Source of the DNA: Macrostomum lignano
Lineage: Eukaryota
NCBI GenBank assembly: GCA_002269645.1
Contig: NIVC01001502.1
Span: 131,827 to 195,826, forward strand
DNA length: 64,000 bases
Reading direction: 5' to 3'
Shown: positions 12 through 51,105 of the stretch, piece by piece
Numbering within the stretch: position 1 is the first letter of the stretch
Layout of the letters: every line of letters begins with the position of its first letter
Program-made: the position numbers and the translations under genes
The notes under the pieces: model-generated
The model's database searches: none
The model's input: only the letters and a program-made list of their open reading frames with translations
What the model was told of the DNA's origin: nothing

Positions 12-25540
<25,529 letters not shown>

Positions 25541-26044
25541 TTCGCGAAGAAGGCGATAGATCCGATTTCAGTGTTAACAAGAGAAATATTTCCACTTTCG
25601 AAGGCGTGTACATGTATGTACATACGATATCAAAATGTCGGCATCACTGACCGTTTATCTGACACAAATACTCCGCCCCCGCAGGTTTCGTACACCTACT
25701 ACATGTACATTCAACATGCAGACAGCCCATTGCAATAAGTCGCAAAACCAACCCGTGTTTCGCTGTTAATTTTTATTAATTTCCAATGGAGCCATTTTTA
25801 AGAAAAAATTCTGAATTCTATTTTGGTAATAAAATAATGCTATTGTTGATCAATGCTATTGGTTATACAAATACATGTATTAGTATATCTTCAAGTACCT
25901 TTTAGCAACTGTAGTGTAATTGAATGTACACCAATTTTATATTAATTACGAGTATTATGACAACTGGAGCGGTTTACACACTGCTAAATTTTGAAATTGT
26001 TTTGATTTTTATATTATTACATGTAGCTCCATCCTGGTCTCAGG

Positions 26045-27587: not shown

Positions 27588-29742
<2,155 letters not shown>

Positions 29743-36039: not shown

Positions 36040-39000
36040 TTAGGCCACGGCCATGACCTCAGCCTGAGGCTTCTGCTGCTTATTCTCCGAATAAGGCTCG
36101 GCCGGCACCGGCTGCTCTTTGGGATCGGCGATGGTCACGTGATCCGGCAGGGGCTTGCGGGGCGCGACGCCTCCAGCCGGGGCCTCCCAGTTCTGCATGA
36201 TCTTCACCTGAGAGGAATTGAGATTGGAGTTAGTGAGTCGTACAGCGGTTCATACAGTGAGTCATACAGGAGTCATACAGTGAGTCATACACGAGTCATA
36301 CAGTGAGTCATACACGAGTCATACACGAGTCATACACGAGTCATACAGTGAGTCATACAGTGAGTCATACAGTGAGTCATACAGTGAGTCATACACGAAT
36401 CATACAGGAGTCATACAGGAGTCATACAGTGAGTCATACACGAGTCATACAGAAGTCATAACTGATACAGTGAGTCAGATCAATAAGCCTCACCTGGATG
36501 CCCAGTACACCCTGCCGGAGCTGTACGTGCCGCACAGACCGGTCAATGAAGCGGACAGACGGCTCGCCGCTGTGGATCATGAAGCCTTCAGTGAATTTCA
36601 TCGATTTGGCGCGCTGACCGCGCAGCTTGCCGCTAACAATGACTTCGGCGCCTTTGGCGCCAGACTCCATAATGAAGCGCAGCACGCCGTAGCAGGCGCG
36701 ACGGACAGCCAGGCCACCGAGAAGCTTGTAGCGCAGGGACTCGGCCTGCATGGTTGGGTTGGCAGTTTGTTTTAGTAAAGAGGATTGGATTCTGCTAGTA
36801 GAGTGCAAGTTAGTTATGCCGTTTGGGGCAACATGACGGTAAATCGGTGACGCTGATTGATCTGGCGCCATCTGACGCTGATTGTTGATCTGGCGCCATC
36901 TAACACTGATTGATCTGGCGCCATCTGACACTGATTGATCTGGCGCCATCTGACGCTGATTGTTGATCTGGCGCCATCTAACACTGATTGATCTGGCGCC
37001 ATCTGACGCTGATTGTTGATCTGGCGCCATCTGACGCTGATTGTTGATCTGGCGCCATCTAACACTGATTGATCTGGCGCCATCTGACGCTGATTAATCT
37101 GGCGCCATCTGACACTGATTGATCTGGCGCCATCTGACGCTGATTGATCAGGCGCCATCTGACGCTGATATATCTGGCGCCATCTGACACTGATTGATCT
37201 GGCGCCATCTGACACTGATTGATCTGGCGCCATCTAACACTGATTGATCTAGCGCCATCTGACACTGATTGATCTGGCGCCATCTAACACTGATTGATCT
37301 AGCGCCATCTGACACTGATTGATCTGGCGCCATCTAACACTGATTGATCTAGCGCCATCTGACACTGATTGATCAGGCGCCATCTAGTACTTATGTTTGC
37401 TTTTAATTTAGTCTTGGCATCATACTTTTCTTAAATAGCTGTCGTCATAAGTTGGTACGAATGTGAACAGCAGATATAGATGTTAAAATCATTGCCATTA
37501 GTACTAAAACTTAAAATTATTGGCTTATGAATTTACGAGTACATGTATGTTTGTAGTCAAGGACTGAATGATGAGATTGGGATCGGGGGTGGGACTGAAC
37601 TGAAGATGGTATCAGATAAGAGACTTAAGATGTGCTCATACAAAGCATGTTGCTGTCGTCATAGCTCAAATCTTTAAGGCTAACGAATGTGAACAGCAGT
37701 AATGCAATTTAATCATAGCTGCTCATATAAAACAACAAAATCATATTTTATGAAATCAATTCCAGTTGGCATCATACTGAACAATATGTTGTCGGCATAA
37801 CTTGTACGAATGTGAACAGCAGAATGGTTATAATCACTGCCAACTTGGGAATTCACGGGAGATGGGACTCGGGATGGGTCTGAGGATGGGACTGAGGATG
37901 GGTCTGAGGATGGGTCTGTGGATGGGACTGAGGATGGGTCTGAGGATGGGTCTGAGGATGGAACTGAGGATGGGACTGTGGATGGGACTGAGGATGGGTC
38001 TGAGGATGGGACTGAGGATGGTCTGAGGATGGGTCTGAGGATGGGACTGAGGGTGGGTCTGAGGGTGGGACTGAGGATGGTCTGAGGATGGGTCTGAGGA
38101 TGGGACTGAGGGTGGGTCTGAGGGTGGGACTGAGGATGGGACAGAGGATGGGTCTGAGGATGGAACTGAGGATGGGTCTGAGGATGGGACGGAGGATGGG
38201 TCTGAGGATGGGACGGAGGATGGAACTGAGGATGGGTCTGAGGATGGGTCTGAGGATGGGTCTGAGGATGGGACGGAGGATGGGACGGAGGATGGAACTG
38301 AGGATGGGTCTGAGGATGGGTCTGAGGATGGGACTGAGGATGGGACTGAGGGTGGGACGGAGGATTGGTCTGAGGATGGGACTGAGGGTGGGTCTGAGGG
38401 TGGGACTGAGGATGGGACAGAGGATGGGTCTGAGGATGGAACTGAGGATGGGTCTGAGGGTGGGACTGAGCATGGAACTGAGGATGGGTCTGAGGATGGG
38501 ACGGAGGATGGGACGGAGGATGGGTCTGAGGATGGGACTGAGGATGGTCTGAGGATGGGTCTGAGGATGGGACTGAGGGTGGCTCTGAGGGTGGGACTGA
38601 GGATGGGACAGAGGATGGGTCTGAGGATGGAACTGAGGATGGGTCTGAGGATGGGACGGAGGATGGGTCTGAGGATGGGACGGAGGATGGGACGGAGGAT
38701 GGGTCTGAGGATGGGACTGAGGATGGTCTGAGGATGGGTCTGAGGATGGGACTGAGGGTGGCTCTGAGGGTGGGACTGAGGATGGGACAGAGGATGGGTC
38801 TGAGGTTGGAACTGAGGATGGGTCTGAGGATGGGACGGAGGATGGGTCTGAGGATGGGACGGAGGATGGGACGGAGGATGGGTCTGAGGATGGGACTGAG
38901 GGTGGGACGGAGGATGGGACTGAGGGTGGGTCAGAGGATGGAACTGAGGATGGGACAGAGTTACAAATGATAAAATCTGTCACCAAGGCAACGCTCAACC

Positions 39001-39318
39001 CACCTGTGCCACAGCGGACAGACCCCTGTTGGCCATCTTCTCCGCGTAGATTTCAATCTGGCCATCCTCGAAGCCGAATCGTTTCTGCAGCACGGCGGTG
39101 AGCTCGCGAACCTTGCGGCCCTTCTCGCCCAGCACGCTCTGGGTGCGGGTGGCCAGCACGATCACCTCGATCTTGGCCGGGGTCACGCGGAGCTCGATGC
39201 CCGAGTACCCGTCCTCGGCTAGTTCGCGCTTCAAGAATTCGTCCAGTTCGGCGCGGAACACGCCGTTGGCAACGAATGCCCGCTTCTTGCTCATCACAGC
39301 ATTCTTGCTGGCGGCCAT
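36040..39318 (-). CDS. RPS3: 40S ribosomal protein S3 (uS3), 244 aa
   Basis: Exons 39318-39004, 36745-36494, 36207-36040, phase 0. Motifs [65 protein letters not shown]. Confidence 0.98.
36232..36478. repeat. Minisatellite, 14 bp unit gagtcatacagt/cacg, RPS3 intron 2
   Basis: Tandem copies. Confidence 0.92.
36850..37386. repeat. Minisatellite, 23-26 bp unit ctgattgatctggcgccatctgaca, RPS3 intron 1
   Basis: Tandem copies. Confidence 0.94.
37415..37497 (-). ncRNA. Box C/D snoRNA, diverged paralog (type 3)
   Basis: TGGCA stem - C ATGATTT - guide CTGCTGTTCACATT - D' CGTA - C' ATGACGA - D ATGA - TGCCA stem; 83 nt, sense to RPS3. Confidence 0.72.
37632..37721 (-). ncRNA. Box C/D snoRNA, type 2, RPS3 intron 1
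   Basis: C ATGATTA (37716-37710), guide ACTGCTGTTCACATT, D' CGTT, C' ATGACGA, D ATGA (37639-37636); terminal stem weak. Confidence 0.62.
37764..37845 (-). ncRNA. Box C/D snoRNA, type 1, RPS3 intron 1
   Basis: 8-bp terminal stem AGTTGGCA/TGCCAACT directly flanking C GTGATTA and D ATGA; guide CTGCTGTTCACATT before D' CGTA; C' ATGCCGA; 82 nt. Confidence 0.78.
37855..38960. repeat. Minisatellite, 12 bp unit gaggatggg(t/a)ct
   Basis: Tandem copies with higher-order block duplications. Confidence 0.96.
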
Positions 39319-39349
39319 GCTTGCATGCGGACAGTGGATACTCTTATTT

Positions 39350-39955
39350 AACCTGACTCTTATCTCCCTACTGACTCTCCTTATTTCACTACAGACTGTT
39401 CTCATCTCTCCCCCTCCTGACTATCCCCCTACTGACTCTCCCCCTACTGACTCTCCCCTTACTGACTCTACCCCTACTGACTCTCCCCCTACTGACTCTC
39501 CCCCTACTGACTCTCAACTACTGATTTTGGTCTACTTACTCTCCTCATCTCCCTACTGACTCTCCTCATCTCCCTACTGACTCTCTCCCTACTGATTCTC
39601 CCCCTACTGACTATCCCCTACTGACTATCCCCTACTGACTCTCCCCCTACTGACTATCCCCTACTGACTCTCCCCCTACTGACTATCCCCTACTGACTCT
39701 CCCCCTACTGACTATCCCCTACTGACTCCCCCCCTACTGACTATCCCCTACTCACTCATCCCCTACTTACTCTCCCCCTACTGACACCCCCTACTGACTC
39801 TCCCCCTACTGACTCTCTTCCTACTGACTCTCCCCCTACTGACTATCCCCTACTGACTCTAACCCTACTGACTACCCCTACTGACTACCCCCTACTGACT
39901 CTCCCCCTACTGACTCTCCCCCTACTGACTCTCCCCAACCGACACTACCCCCTAC
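39350..39955. repeat. Minisatellite, 15-16 bp unit ctactgactctcccc, upstream of the RPS3 ATG
   Basis: Tandem copies. Confidence 0.94.
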
Positions 39956-41004
39956 AGCCTGACAAGTGGCAGTAAAGGAGCCAAGAACCAAGTGAAGTCG
40001 CATAATGCAGAGCTTATAAATCTGCACTAGTTACTAAAAACAATTGCAACTTAAAGATTTAGGCGACAGCTTAACTGAAGACGCGTCTCGTTTTATTAAA
40101 AAATATTTTTCATATTTCCACTTCATATATAAAAAGTAAAAGGAGGGTTGCGGCTGTCAGATGTCTTAAGTCAAACAAAATGATATTAAGGGTCAAATTT
40201 AGGGAGAAAATAAGACGGTGACAGCTTCAGACACTGAATTGATTTGCAGATAAGAGAGTTATTTAATAACAAAAAGGGCATTAACGATACAATGGGTTTG
40301 TACAACAGGATTAAAAGTAATAAACTACTGCCAGTAGCTGGGTTATAAGCTATATATATTGCTACAGCACAAAGCAAAGACGAGACCCAAAGAAAATGTG
40401 CGAGTTCTGCCGCCCCACCCACGGACCGAAGCACCTGCACTCGCGCTGCACACGCTCAATAGTGAATAATTAATAATCCGATTAATACATTTTTGCATAC
40501 ATTCTGTTCGAAAAACAACTTAATAAACACACGGCAGTGACACAAAACATGTGCGATAAACTATTATTGTACGCAGAAGCAAACTAAATTAATATAGAGA
40601 GTAAATTTATAAATAAACATACAATCAATCACAATTTCTGTTGACAAATAAAGATTCTTAGCGGGGTCGCTAACCAGCGTCTGCAATTTTCTAATAAAGT
40701 TGTCTAGCTAGAGAATGGACAGAGAAAAAAATTGACCTTGTTCGATGCACGTCTCAAGTTTTGTTCTCAATGGAAAAATTGTCTCATCACGCTACTATTG
40801 AAGGGCTTCTACACGGATAAGTAGTGAGTTTAGGTGATGAGCTGAATATTAATTCAATTTGTGTATTTTTACAATGCAAAGCAAGCAGTTCTCGAAATTG
40901 TACGATTTGGATGGCAGAGTGCGCGAGAAATATGCCGAAATAAAAGTACTCATTGGAGTACGCGCGAACTCTTCACTGTCACATTTACAAGCATTTTGAG
41001 GGCC

Positions 41005-41825
41005 ATGCTTATGGTGATTTGTGGGCGATTCTTATGGTGATTTGTGGGCGATTCTTATGGTGATTTGTAGGCGATTCTCATGGTGGTTTGTGGGCGATTC
41101 TTATGGTGGTTTGTGAGCGATTCTTATGGTGATTTGTGGGCGATTCTTATGGTGATTTGTAGGCGATTCTCATGGTGGTTTGTGGGCGATTCTTATGGTG
41201 GTTTGTGGGCGATTCTTATGGTGATTTGTGGGCGATTCTTATGGTGATTTGTAGGCGATTCTCATGGTGGTTTGTGGGCGATTCTTATGGTGGTTTGTGG
41301 GCGATTCTTATGGTGGTTTGTGGGCGATTCTTATGGTGGTTTGTGAGCGATTCTTATGGTGGTTTGTAGGCGATTCTCATGGTGGTTTGTGGGCGATTCT
41401 TATGGTGATTTGTAGGCGATTCTCATGGTGGTTTGTGGGCGATTCTTATGGTGGTTTGTGGGCGATTCTTATGGTGGTTTGTGGGCGATTCTTATGGTGG
41501 TTTGTGAGCGATTCTTATGGTGGTTTGTAGGCGATTCTCATGGTGGTTTGTGGGCGATTCTTATGGTGATTTGTAGGCGATTCTCATGGTGGTTTGTGGG
41601 CGATTCTTATGGCGGTTTGTGGGCGATTCTCATGGTGGTTTGTGGGCGAGTCTCATGGTGGTTTGTGGACGATTCTTATGGTGGTTTGTGAGCGATTCTT
41701 ATGGTGATTTGTAGGCGATTCTCATGGTGGTTTGTGGGCGATTCTTATGGTGGTTTGTGGGCGATTCTCATGTTGGTTTTTTGGCGAGTCTCATGGTGAT
41801 TTTTTGGCGAGTCTCATGGTTTGTT
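41005..41825. repeat. Minisatellite, 23 bp unit ttatggtggtttgtgggcgattc
   Basis: Tandem copies. Confidence 0.96.
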
Positions 41826-42017
41826 TTTTCAGGCTTGGAAGAAAGGTGATACAGTTCGGTTTTAGGGAGGAGATTCTTACGAGTTTTTTCACACAGTTTC
41901 AAAGCAATCAATCAGTTTTGGTAAAAAAAAGCAATTTTAAGTGAAATCAGTGACTTCTTACAAAGCAATAGATGTATGCATATATTGTCATTAACTTATC
42001 AACGGTCGCTAATTGCA

Positions 42018-45000
42018 TCAGCCAATCTGCATGCCCTGACCGCAGATGGACGAACTCTGCTGCTGCTGCTGAGGCAAATCAGACGAGGAGTTCAATGATC
42101 CCGTAGCAACAGCGGCGCCTGCTGCCATGCTGATAGTCACGCTAATGCCCAGGTTGCCAGTCTCAGCGAACAGGGAGGCAATATTTGAATCGAATACCAG
42201 GCAGTCCGAGTTCGCAATGGCGGCGTGCACGCCGTCGTGTATTGACCGCGGCGTCGCTTCCCAGGTGAGTCGGCGGCGCTGGCCATTGAGCTCGAGTCTG
42301 TAGGCGAACTGCTCCGCTTGCTTGCGGGTGCCAATGAGCTGCACGATGGCGTAGAACATCACCTGCAGTATAGGCGGGGTGGAGATGCTATTTGAGAAGA
42401 TGAGAAGTTGGGCAGTGGTGGTTAAGCTAGCTAACATCATGCTGTTGTGTAAATGAAGAAGACACATAATATAATGAGATGGGACTGGAGATGGGATCGG
42501 GTATGGGTTTGGAAATGGGATTCGGTGTGGGACTGAAGATACGCTTGGGTATGGGAATGGAGATGGGATCGAGTATCGGACTGAAGATGGGATCGGGTAT
42601 GGGACTAGAGATGGGATCGGGTATGGGACTAGAGATGGGATCGGGTATGGGACTGGAGATAGGATCGGGTATGGGAATGGAGATGGGATTGAGTATGGGA
42701 CTGAAGATGGGATCGGGTATGGGACTGGGAGATGGGATCGGGTATGGGACTGGGAAATGGGATCTAGGATCGGGTAAGGGACTGAAGATGGGATCGGGTA
42801 TGAGACTGGAGATGGGATCGGGTATGGAACTGAGATGGGATCGGGTATGGGACTGGAGATGGGATCGGGTATGGAACTGAAGATGGGATCGGGTATGGGA
42901 CTGAAGATGGGATCGGGTATGGGACTGGAGATAGGATCTGGTATAGTATGGGAATGGAGAAAGGATCTGCAATGGGATCAGGTATGGGACTGAATAACCT
43001 ATTATTTGCTCATACAAAGCATGTTGCTGTCGTCATAGCTCAAATCTTTAAGGCTAACGAATGTGAACAGCAGTAATGCAATTTAATCATAGCTGCTCAT
43101 ATAAAACAACAAAATCATATTTTATGAAATCAATTCCAGTTGGCATCATACTGAACAATATGCTGTCGGCATAACTTGTACGAATGTGAACAGCAGAATG
43201 GTTTTAATCATTGCCAACTTGGGAATTGACGGGAGATGGGACTCGGGATGGGTCTGAGGATAGGTCTGAGGATGGGACTGAGGATGGGACTGAGGAAGGG
43301 TCTGAGGATGGGTCTGAAGATGGAACTGAGGAAGAGTATGAGTTAGGGTCTGAGGATGGGTCTGAGGAAGGGTCTGAGGATGGGTCTGAGGATGGGTCTG
43401 ATGATGGGTCTGAGGATGGGTCTGAGGATGGGTCTGAGGATGGAACTGAGGATGGAACTGAGGACGGGACTGTAGAAGGGTCTGAGGATGGGTCTGAGGA
43501 TGGGACTGAGGATGGGTCTGAGGATGGGTCTGAGGATGGGTCTGAGGATGGGTCTGAGGATGGAACTGAGGACGGGACTGTGGAAGGGTCTGAGGATGGG
43601 TCTGAGGATGGAACTGAGGACGGGACTGTGGAAGGGTCTGAGGATGGGACTGAGGATGGGACTCAGGATGGGACTGAGGGTGGGACTGGGTATGGCACTG
43701 GAGATGGGATCGGGTATGGGACTGAAGATGGGATCGAGTATGGGACTGAAGATGGGATCGGGTATGAGACTGGAGATGGGATCGGGTATGGGACTGGAGA
43801 TGGGATCGGGTATGGGACTAGAGATGGGATCGGGTATGGGACTGGAGATGGGATCGGGTATGGGACTGAAGATGGGATCGGGTATGGGACTGGAGATAGG
43901 ATCTGGTATAGTATGGGAAGGGAGAAAGGATCTGCAATGGGATCAGGTATGGGACTGAATAACCTATTATTTGCTCATACAAAGCATGTTGCTGTCGTCA
44001 TAGCTCAAATCTTTAAGGCTAACGAATGTGAACAGCAGTAATGCAATTTAATCATAGCTGCTCATATAAAACAACAAAATCATATTTTATGAAATCAATT
44101 CCAGTTGGCATCATACTGAACAATATGCTGTCGGCATAACTTGTACGAATGTGAACAGCAGAATGGTTTTAATCATTGCCAACTTGGGAATTGACGGGAG
44201 ATGGGACTCGGGATTGGTCTGAAGATGGGACTAAGGATGGGTCTGACGATGGGTCTGAGGATGGAACTGAGGATAGGACTGAGGATGGACTGAGGATGGG
44301 ACTGACGATGGGACTGACGATGGGTCAGAGGATAGGTCTGAGGATGGGTCTGAGGACGGGTCTGAGGATAGGTCTGAGGACGGGTCTGAGGACGGGTCTG
44401 AGGATGGGACTGAGGACGGGTCTGAGGATGGGTCTGAGGATGGGACTGAGGGTGGGACTCAGGATGGGACTGAGGGTGGGACTGGGTATGGGACTGGAGA
44501 TGGGATCGGGTATGGGACTAAAGATGGGATCGGGTATGGCACTGGAGATGGGATCGGTTATGGGACCGAAGATGGGATCGGCCGATCGGGTATGGGACTA
44601 AAGATGGGATTGGGTATGGGACTCAAGATGGGATCGGGTATGGGACTGGAGATGCGACTGGGTATGATACTAAAGATGGGATCGGGTATGGCACTGGAGA
44701 TGGGATCGGGTATGGGACTGAAGATGGGATCGGGTATGGGACTAAATATGGGACTGAAGATAGGATCGAGTATGGGACTGCAGATTGGGTCGGGTATGCG
44801 ACTAAATGCATGACCAATTATCTGCTTATACAAGGCATGTCACTGCTATCACGGTTAAAATATTTTGAAAAGGAACACACAGGATTGCGAGAGAGAAGAA
44901 TGGCCCACTCACCTGACTATCCATTCGCTCCTGTTTCTCCAGTACAAGCATGAAATGATAGCCGAAGCAATTCTGCATCATGACCCAATCCACCGCGCCG

Positions 45001-50409: not shown

Positions 50410-51105
50410 TGCTTAGCAACTGACGCTCGGGTTTGCCTCAGAGAAGGCAAGGGTCTTGCATTGGCGCACGTGATTTTCCCCCATAAACACGAGCCAAGCG
50501 TCACGGACCCCCTGGCCGCCGCCCGGGAAACGCCGTTGTTCATATCGCGGCCCCATCAGCAGCTCCACCGGCGCTCGGCCCGTTGTTGCGTTGGGCGCCG
50601 TCTGGTAAGCCAGCATCCACTCGTCAGAGCGATCGCGCTAGTCTTTGTTTTCGGCGATATGGCAGCGCGAATGGCCTTGTTGATCGATCTGTTCAGGCGC
50701 TCGGTCAAGCCTTTGGCAGCCGGGTATAGCGGAGTGATGGCAGGAAGTCCTTAAACTGTCCAGACGAGAACGGAGGTCCATTATCCGTAATGATCTCCTC
50801 CGGGATGCCAAACCTGCAGAACGACTCGCGCAGCCGTGGGACAATGGCGTCTGCTGTTGTGGACCGCAAGACTATTGAACCTCCGGGTACCGGGAGTAGT
50901 GGTCTACGCAGACGAGCAGCATTTTTTTCTGAAGCGGGCCCAGCTGGTCGGCGCCGATCGACAGCCAGGCGCGTTTGGGTATTTTGGATGGTGCAAGGGC
51001 GTCGCGCTGACTGTTGGGTTGTGGGATGACTCGATGCAGCTCCGGCATCGGCGCTCATTTTTGGCCACCAGACCTTGCTGTTCCTGAGCATCCTGAGCAT
51101 CAAAG
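50410..51105 (-). mobile_element. Decayed Ty3/Gypsy LTR-retrotransposon integrase fragment (frameshifted)
   Basis: Motifs across frames: RNSKVWWPKMSAD (HHCC region), STTADAIVPRLRESFCRFGIPEEIITDNGPPFSSGQFKDF (second catalytic D), PAAKGLTERLNRSI (catalytic E), LAYQTAPNATTGRAPVELLMG. No LTRs seen. Confidence 0.85.

Follow-up and report, generated by a model that had tools for sequence, protein, structure and literature searches.

Do introns of the flatworm Macrostomum lignano encode small nucleolar RNAs (snoRNAs) of the box C/D class whose terminal boxes depart from the consensus? The question is raised by a 64-kilobase (kb) stretch of M. lignano DNA (hereafter the window, numbered from its first letter), in which the original prediction described seven intronic units with paired changes in their C and D boxes and a guide to large-subunit (LSU) ribosomal RNA (rRNA). 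Judging from the sequence comparisons reported here, the units are probably a genuine, unannotated box C/D guide family in which the terminal kink-turn carries a U-A pair instead of the usual G-C pair, and we hold with about the same confidence that at least two of the three sequence types distinguished below, A and C, are real methylation guides. The minus strand of the 64-kb window carries the 14-mer CTGCTGTTCACATT at positions 37460, 37686, 37809, 43060, 43183, 44025 and 44148, and the plus strand carries none. With up to two mismatches allowed, about 0.67 matches are expected by chance, and seven were reached in 0 of 100 dinucleotide-preserving shuffles. All seven units, which are ~82-86 nucleotides (nt) long, read RUGAUU(A/U), a spacer of 8-12 nt, the 14-mer guide, CGU(A/U), a second spacer, AUG(A/C)CGA, a spacer of 16-18 nt and AUGA. 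The element order originally claimed is thus present in every copy, and the earlier coordinates were right within 2 nt. The units are as follows (bp, base pairs).

37415..37497, minus strand: u1, type A, 83 nt, found among the seven CTGCTGTTCACATT matches and scored at 73 bits by the family covariance model; stem UGGCA 37497-37493, C box AUGAUUU 37492-37486, guide 37473-37460, D' CGUA 37459-37456, C' AUGACGA 37448-37442, D box AUGA 37423-37420, stem UGCCA 37419-37415 (5 bp).
37634..37719, minus strand: u2, type B, ~86 nt, CTGCTGTTCACATT match, covariance model 61 bits; C box AUGAUUA, guide 37699-37686, D' CGUU, C' AUGACGA, D box AUGA, 2-bp terminal stem.
37764..37845, minus strand: u3, type C, 82 nt, covariance model 113 bits; C box GUGAUUA, guide 37822-37809, D' CGUA, C' AUGCCGA, D box AUGA, 8-bp stem AGUUGGCA/UGCCAACU.
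43008..43093, minus strand: u4, type B, CTGCTGTTCACATT match and covariance model.
43138..43219, minus strand: u5, type C, covariance model 115 bits, fold z = -4.55; C box AUGAUUA 43211-43205, guide 43196-43183, D' 43182-43179, C' 43172-43166, D box 43149-43146, 8-bp terminal stem.
43973..44058, minus strand: u6, type B, CTGCTGTTCACATT match and covariance model.
44103..44184, minus strand: u7, type C, box-plus-stem scan and covariance model.

How many independent sequences do these copies represent? Alignments reduced the seven to three diverged types, A (u1), B (u2, u4 and u6) and C (u3, u5 and u7). The type B copies are identical inside the unit, the 3' flank of u4 being unlike that of u2; u5 and u7 are identical, and u3 differs from them at 3 positions. 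The seven exact guide copies therefore stand, as three sequence types rather than as seven independent units. Between types, boxes and guide are identical at 34 of 36 positions in every pairwise comparison, and the spacers reach 29-51% identity even when optimally aligned. This contrast, which bears out the invariant guide and diverging spacers first described, with three independent comparisons as its basis, is by these alignments the pattern expected of snoRNA paralogues under selection, and on sequence grounds it constitutes the main evidence for functional units rather than mere repeats. It also bears on the idea that the units are repeats of another nature (a piece of a mobile element, a sequence associated with minisatellites, a stray antisense stretch of ribosomal DNA (rDNA) or an intronic splicing element) whose likeness to the boxes is coincidental. 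Such an origin would suit units that sit beside minisatellites, have spread by segmental duplication and match no curated RNA family; however, columns are conserved exactly where the boxes and the guide lie, strand and intron placement do not vary among the units, terminal stems stand directly against the boxes, and the hairpins are far too short for a microRNA precursor. In addition, complementarity to rRNA stops exactly at the edges of the guide, so that the units are not rDNA fragments. We consider a non-snoRNA repeat highly improbable.

The placement of the units was then read from the host genes. The interval 26040-49315 of the window is identical to part of contig NIVC01001502.1 (GCA_002269645.1), and the gene calls on that contig place the units in introns of the genes for ribosomal protein S3 (RpS3) and a sina/SIAH E3 ligase. 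A query joined from two RpS3 exons in the window was 100% identical to M. lignano uS3 in a protein search. The relevant intervals are listed below.

36754..39003, minus strand: RpS3 intron 1, from gene calls and reading of the splice sites, holding u3, u2 and u1 in transcription order.
~39306-39004 and 36753-36492, minus strand: RpS3 coding exons flanking intron 1, from gene calls and splice sites.
42363..44912, minus strand: sina/SIAH E3 ligase intron, from a Sina_RING/ZnF/TRAF gene call and splice sites, holding u7, u6, u5 and u4.
Upstream exon ending at 44913 and last exon 42362-42018, minus strand: sina/SIAH exons, from gene calls and splice sites.
37630-38537 versus 43004-43901 and 43969-44780: cassette regions shared between the two introns.

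Gene calls and splice-site reading thus confirmed that the units are intronic and in sense to their hosts, three in RpS3 and four in sina/SIAH. An intronic location in sense to a transcribed host gene is the metazoan norm for box C/D snoRNAs. A ~230-nt cassette comprising a type C and a type B unit is present three times together with a flanking 12-nt minisatellite, GATGGGACTGAG, once in one intron and twice in the other, and the alignments indicate that it was copied three times, recently. Over 900 nt, cassette and minisatellite are ~84% identical between the RpS3 and sina introns, the units themselves being 98-100% identical.

Two further M. lignano loci were compared. NIVC01000834.1, a contig 97.8% identical, carries five copies: the sina cassette that is tandemly doubled on NIVC01001502.1 is single there (5724-5944), giving seven versus five. 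The type C copy there mixes u3 with u5 states in a mosaic, suggesting gene conversion. Over the 1.24 kb surrounding u1-u3, this contig and the window are 100% identical, and the comparison is thus uninformative on purifying selection. NIVC01001130.1 contains a third, diverged RpS3 locus (10001-11354) with short introns, whose protein is 98% identical and whose exons are 83-89% identical at the DNA level; no trace of the snoRNA units was found in it, and no sina gene was called upstream within the 10 kb examined.

Can the terminal boxes form a functional closure? Directly at the boxes, type A has a stem of 5 bp (UGGCA/UGCCA) and type C one of 8 bp (AGUUGGCA/UGCCAACU), and type C folds much better than its shuffles (z = -4.55). 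Type B is closed by 2 bp only (GC/GC), which is marginal, so that the stem ascribed to all units holds for types A and C. In box C/D snoRNAs the terminal stem is usually 4-8 bp. The HGNC rule asks for at least 2 bp (PMC4914119). A strict scan with consensus boxes (RUGAUGA/CUGA) over both strands of the 64 kb yielded zero candidates, and a box-plus-stem scan with the variant boxes, also over both strands, recovered types A and C and nothing else, as expected from the claim that strict scanners would miss the family.

The boxes RUGAUU(A/U) and AUGA each carry one deviation from consensus in all units. In the C/D kink-turn, G3A4 of both boxes form tandem sheared pairs, U5 and U2 a U.U pair, and G6 pairs with C1 (PMC8162545, PMC6770171). 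Read from the sequence, the units have the full pairing capacity of this motif: G3A4 of the C box stands opposite G3A4 of the D box, U5 opposite U2, and U6 forms a Watson-Crick pair with A1, to which types B and C add an A7-U(-1) pair. All three types have U6-A1 in place of G6-C1, so that the fourth stem-II pair stays Watson-Crick. The paired change originally proposed is therefore structurally correct, with the pair kept; as it is one state common to all three types, it reflects at most one evolutionary event rather than repeated covariation. Neither variant box is unprecedented singly, since each has an accepted precedent: ATGA was an accepted D-box variant in a scan of the human snoRNAome (PMC4914119), AUGA is the consensus of the yeast U18 D' box (PMC5389607), and UGAUUA stands at the C box in the Rfam consensus of plant snoU36a. 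The single deviations in these precedents are the same as those in the flatworm units; what differs is that here both occur together in the terminal motif, restoring a Watson-Crick pair. Archaeal Nop5 makes sequence-specific stem-II contacts only with the C in D/D' and with the GA that ends C/C' (PMC5389607). A terminal motif without these contact nucleotides is, as far as the sequence goes, the one feature that we judge to be unusual.

The off-consensus boxes also bring up decay: the units might be snoRNA pseudogenes derived from a canonical snoRNA elsewhere and spread by segmental duplication, giving no stable ribonucleoprotein. The two terminal boxes and D' depart from consensus, type B is nearly stemless, four of the seven copies are very recent duplicates within unstable minisatellite DNA, and copy number changes between near-identical contigs with none at the paralogous RpS3 locus, all of which would be in line with decay. 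Against this, three old and otherwise unalignable paralogues share both box changes with the Watson-Crick pair kept, the tandem G.A and U.U pairs are intact in every copy, and random decay would not have spared exactly the columns of the invariant 17-nt guide plus D'. We regard decaying pseudogenes as unlikely.

The internal motif is variable as well. D' is CGUA in types A and C and CGUU in type B, and C' is AUGACGA in types A and B and AUGCCGA in type C. Both C1 of D' and the GA ending C' are preserved, i.e. the nucleotides contacted by Nop5/Nop56 (PMC5389607), and their retention supports the register used for the +5 rule below, by inference from those contacts. A second covariation, between C5 of C' and G2 of D', had also been suggested, but it is unconvincing: a short Watson-Crick helix, UCGU/ACGA, is the simpler reading of C'/D', and a C.U mismatch breaks the neighbouring pair in type C. 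The 19-nt D'-C' spacer of type B forms a 5-bp hairpin of its own, which would hold D' and C' adjacent and fits the box assignment. In all three types UGCUGUU, which makes up the guide's 5' half, can pair with a conserved GACAGCA that runs over the end of C' into the bases after it, giving an intramolecular helix of 6-7 bp, for example:

43195-43189 with 43167-43161, minus strand: guide/GACAGCA helix.

The conserved GACAGCA mimics the ACAGCA of the rRNA target sequence, and the 5' flank of type B, GAGCAG, can likewise pair with the guide. A second guide, next to the D box, was sought, and the C'-D spacers of the three types proved unconserved except for CAGC...GU. The more specific proposition, that of a functional family in which the near-universal stem-II G-C pair was swapped for U-A, with the nucleotides read by Nop5/Nop58 gone from the terminal motif and kept in the internal one, we advance only tentatively.

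Which RNA does the guide recognize? Metagenome contigs were scanned with a pattern made of the flanks only, AAGTGGAGAAGGGTT and TTGAACATGG separated by N15, so that the target tests below concern environmental eukaryotic rDNA. Exactly CCATGTGAACAGCAG was carried by 90 of the 120 flank-anchored LSU rDNAs, and in 5/5 contigs examined the site, with the target 15-mer CCAUGUGAACAGCAG, lay inside a full or partial Rfam LSU_rRNA_eukarya match. Across three complete environmental units comprising the small-subunit (SSU), 5.8S and LSU genes, the guide had a single contiguous Watson-Crick match of at least 13 nt, which fell on this site. Pairing extends over 13 nt in types A and C and over 14 nt in type B, where the preceding A also pairs; such lengths fall within the ~10-21 nt of an antisense element ending at D or D'. 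The base beside D' is unpaired (U opposite C), the duplex ending one base before D'. The proposed LSU guide thus has a 13-14 nt pairing with a conserved and unique site in these rDNAs, and conservation of the target makes its presence in M. lignano 28S rRNA very likely.

Counting upstream from D', the guide's fifth base is an A, paired to the U of AUG-U-GAAC, and the +5 rule applied from the proposed D' selects this U, as predicted. In line with the link that had been drawn to human Um2402, we take this U to be U2402 of human 28S; the position of Cm2409, on the C seven bases downstream, agrees with this. The methylated site itself exists in human 28S (PMC11773364), where Um2402 is guided by SNORD143 and SNORD144, formerly ZL5 and ZL6, from SEC31A intron 3 (PMC11773364, PMC4053766). 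Yeast Um1888, guided by snR62, was considered as the same site and ruled out, since it corresponds to human Um2824/U34, and we claim no yeast counterpart.

Other pairings were also sought. By inspection, the D'-C' spacer showed no accessory pairing with the rRNA beside the target. The total of other 12-mers antisense to rRNA in the window was at chance level, with no other significant element; a fourfold LSU-antisense 12-mer, CACATGTTAGAC, at 2575-2966 on the plus strand was discarded as a chance match repeated by a 23-nt minisatellite (2530-3100) with no boxes. A further match of the guide, at 12 of 14 positions, is to the conserved 5.8S sequence AAUGUGAAUUGCAG; it falls into 8 + 4 nt with two central mismatches (rDNA unit L059, ~4356, minus strand), takes in the last guide U on the 3' side, which has no partner on 28S, and is probably coincidental. 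This interrupted match, the degenerate D' (CGUA) and a C'/D' that can form a plain helix instead of a kink-loop (K-loop) are what would favour a C/D-like RNA that binds the same rRNA site without methylating it, in a chaperone or processing role as for U3, domain A of U14 or SNORD13, or that has another target. Duplex length, D' spacing and the retained C1 and GA contacts nevertheless fit a methylation guide, the selected nucleotide coincides with a known human 2'-O-methylated site, and the 5.8S match is broken in its centre. A non-methylating RNA is, in our view, quite improbable.

Do known guides of the same nucleotide share ancestry with the flatworm units? The nucleotide predicted here as the target, and the conserved LSU sequence around it, are shared with SNORD143/144, which, like the flatworm units, are intronic, occur as multiple copies in one host intron and share the guide region between copies (PMC11773364, PMC4053766). 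The hosts differ, being SEC31A (intron 3) in one case and RpS3 and sina in the other, and the two sets, likened here by published description, are linked by no Rfam match. The discoverers of ZL5/ZL6 retrieved no homologues outside mammals (PMC4053766), which leaves common descent with the flatworm family unsupported; independent origin or guide turnover is likely. The flatworm family would thus be a functional analogue of SNORD143/144 in different hosts.

At Rfam gathering thresholds the whole window had zero matches, and at E <= 10 the interval 37350-37900 gave noise only (E > 5), to SNORD11B, snoU36a and Afu_335. A RAGATH-7 match on the plus strand of that interval was at noise level and meaningless. 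The family is indeed unrecognised by Rfam, as had been stated, in that no model matches it; this is normal for flatworm snoRNAs and no sign of strangeness, given that in schistosomes no known snoRNA except U3 was found by homology (PMC2770079). A literature search brought up no publication on M. lignano snoRNAs. A covariance model of the family (R1), run with filters off on the window, NIVC01000834.1 and NIVC01001130.1, returned only the known copies, seven in the window and five on NIVC01000834.1, with no diverged members and no members with other guides; the best extra match, 25898-25991 (E 0.6), was without boxes. Homologues in other species, sought through an RpS3 protein search, were not found in a collection without another Macrostomum genome.

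Taken together, the anatomy of the units is supported as that of box C/D methylation guides on sequence grounds. Canonical intronic guides such as U24/SNORD24 and U18 have the same order of stem, C, antisense element, D', C', D and stem, and share with the flatworm units a length of ~80-90 nt, an antisense element beside D', the +5 rule and a location in a ribosomal protein gene intron. The flatworm units differ from them by a U instead of G at C-box position 6 and U/A at position 7, by A instead of C at D-box position 1, by a D' of CGUA/CGUU, and by the presence of three to four units per intron.

Extending established small nucleolar ribonucleoprotein (snoRNP) biology to these units, they would be transcribed within the pre-mRNAs of RpS3 and sina and freed from the introns after excision; because several units share an intron, some cutting between units would be needed. 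Exonucleases would trim each unit to its protein-protected ends. As a box C/D snoRNA, each unit would be expected to persist as a stable RNA in the 60-170 nt range, carrying Snu13, Nop56, Nop58 and fibrillarin. RUGAUUW and AUGA, closed by a stem of 5-8 bp, would form a kink-turn with tandem sheared G.A/A.G pairs, a U.U pair and a U-A pair, to which Snu13 and Nop58 would bind, and the internal D' (CGUA/CGUU) and C' (AUGMCGA) would bring in Nop56 together with a second fibrillarin. The antisense element of 13-14 nt just upstream of D' would pair with the LSU rRNA sequence 5'-AUGUGAACAGCAG-3', and fibrillarin would 2'-O-methylate the U paired to the fifth guide base, in AUG-U-GAAC, presumably the equivalent of human 28S Um2402.

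Several points weigh against this interpretation. The independent sequences number only three and no cross-species homologues were found, hence there is no covariation in the stems. The terminal boxes depart from consensus precisely where archaeal Nop5 makes its sequence-specific contacts (G6 of C, C1 of D), and mutations in stem II impair core-protein binding in extracts but can be tolerated in vivo, according to work cited in PMC6770171. The CGUA of D' has no G for the second sheared pair, so that C'/D' would form no proper K-loop and Snu13 may not bind there. The pairing of UGCUGUU with GACAGCA could occlude the guide, or could simply be tolerated. Type B is without a real terminal stem, and the unit-free RpS3 paralogue indicates that the copies are not tied to every RpS3 gene. 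From their sequences, we retain types A and C as strong candidates; type B, closed by 2 bp only, may be a weaker or inactive form. We conclude that the observation made in the original prediction is confirmed and its core interpretation supported, and that the prediction overstated the independence of the copies, the strength of the covariation and the surprise value of the family.

The surroundings of the units have some features of their own. On the minus strand of 26040-49315, the gene order is sina, RpS3, an FG-repeat nucleoporin-like gene (a 1120-amino-acid gene call on the contig and a 1218-amino-acid open reading frame (ORF) in the window) and a proteasome alpha subunit, and this order is the same on both near-identical contigs. 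Genes in this interval are GC-rich and introns AT-rich. Nearly every intron or intergenic stretch holds long minisatellite arrays, whose repeat period is 11-29 nt and whose copies number up to 92 (for example 36232-44780, 2530-3100, 8621-10392, 14539-15626, 17874-18326 and 28148-29742); these arrays yield many spurious long repeat ORFs, and the snoRNA cassettes sit between such arrays. At 50705-51103 on the minus strand, a fragmentary ORF containing a retroelement integrase-like motif, RFGIPEEIITDNGPPFSSGQFKDF, points to a degraded long terminal repeat (LTR) retrotransposon remnant.

What would this family mean for the biology of the organism? It reveals no new kind of RNA and no new mechanism, being an ordinary kind of gene with slightly unusual boxes. 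In practical terms, snoRNA scanners for fast-evolving phyla should accept UGAUUW/AUGA box pairs. If real, the family would provide a natural test of whether stem II of box C/D RNAs is read as sequence or as shape: should the RNAs be stable and active, either flatworm Nop58 reads shape and not sequence, or the internal motif drives assembly. It would further predict a specific rRNA methylation, one that is variable and disease-linked in human cells, and a flatworm would methylate the Um2402 equivalent with guides that have no relation to SNORD143/144, which are specific to mammals; this would exemplify guide turnover or convergence at a conserved modification site. For Macrostomum lignano itself, a model of regeneration and stem cells, the family, if real, would be the first concrete target-assigned snoRNA in a nearly empty catalogue.

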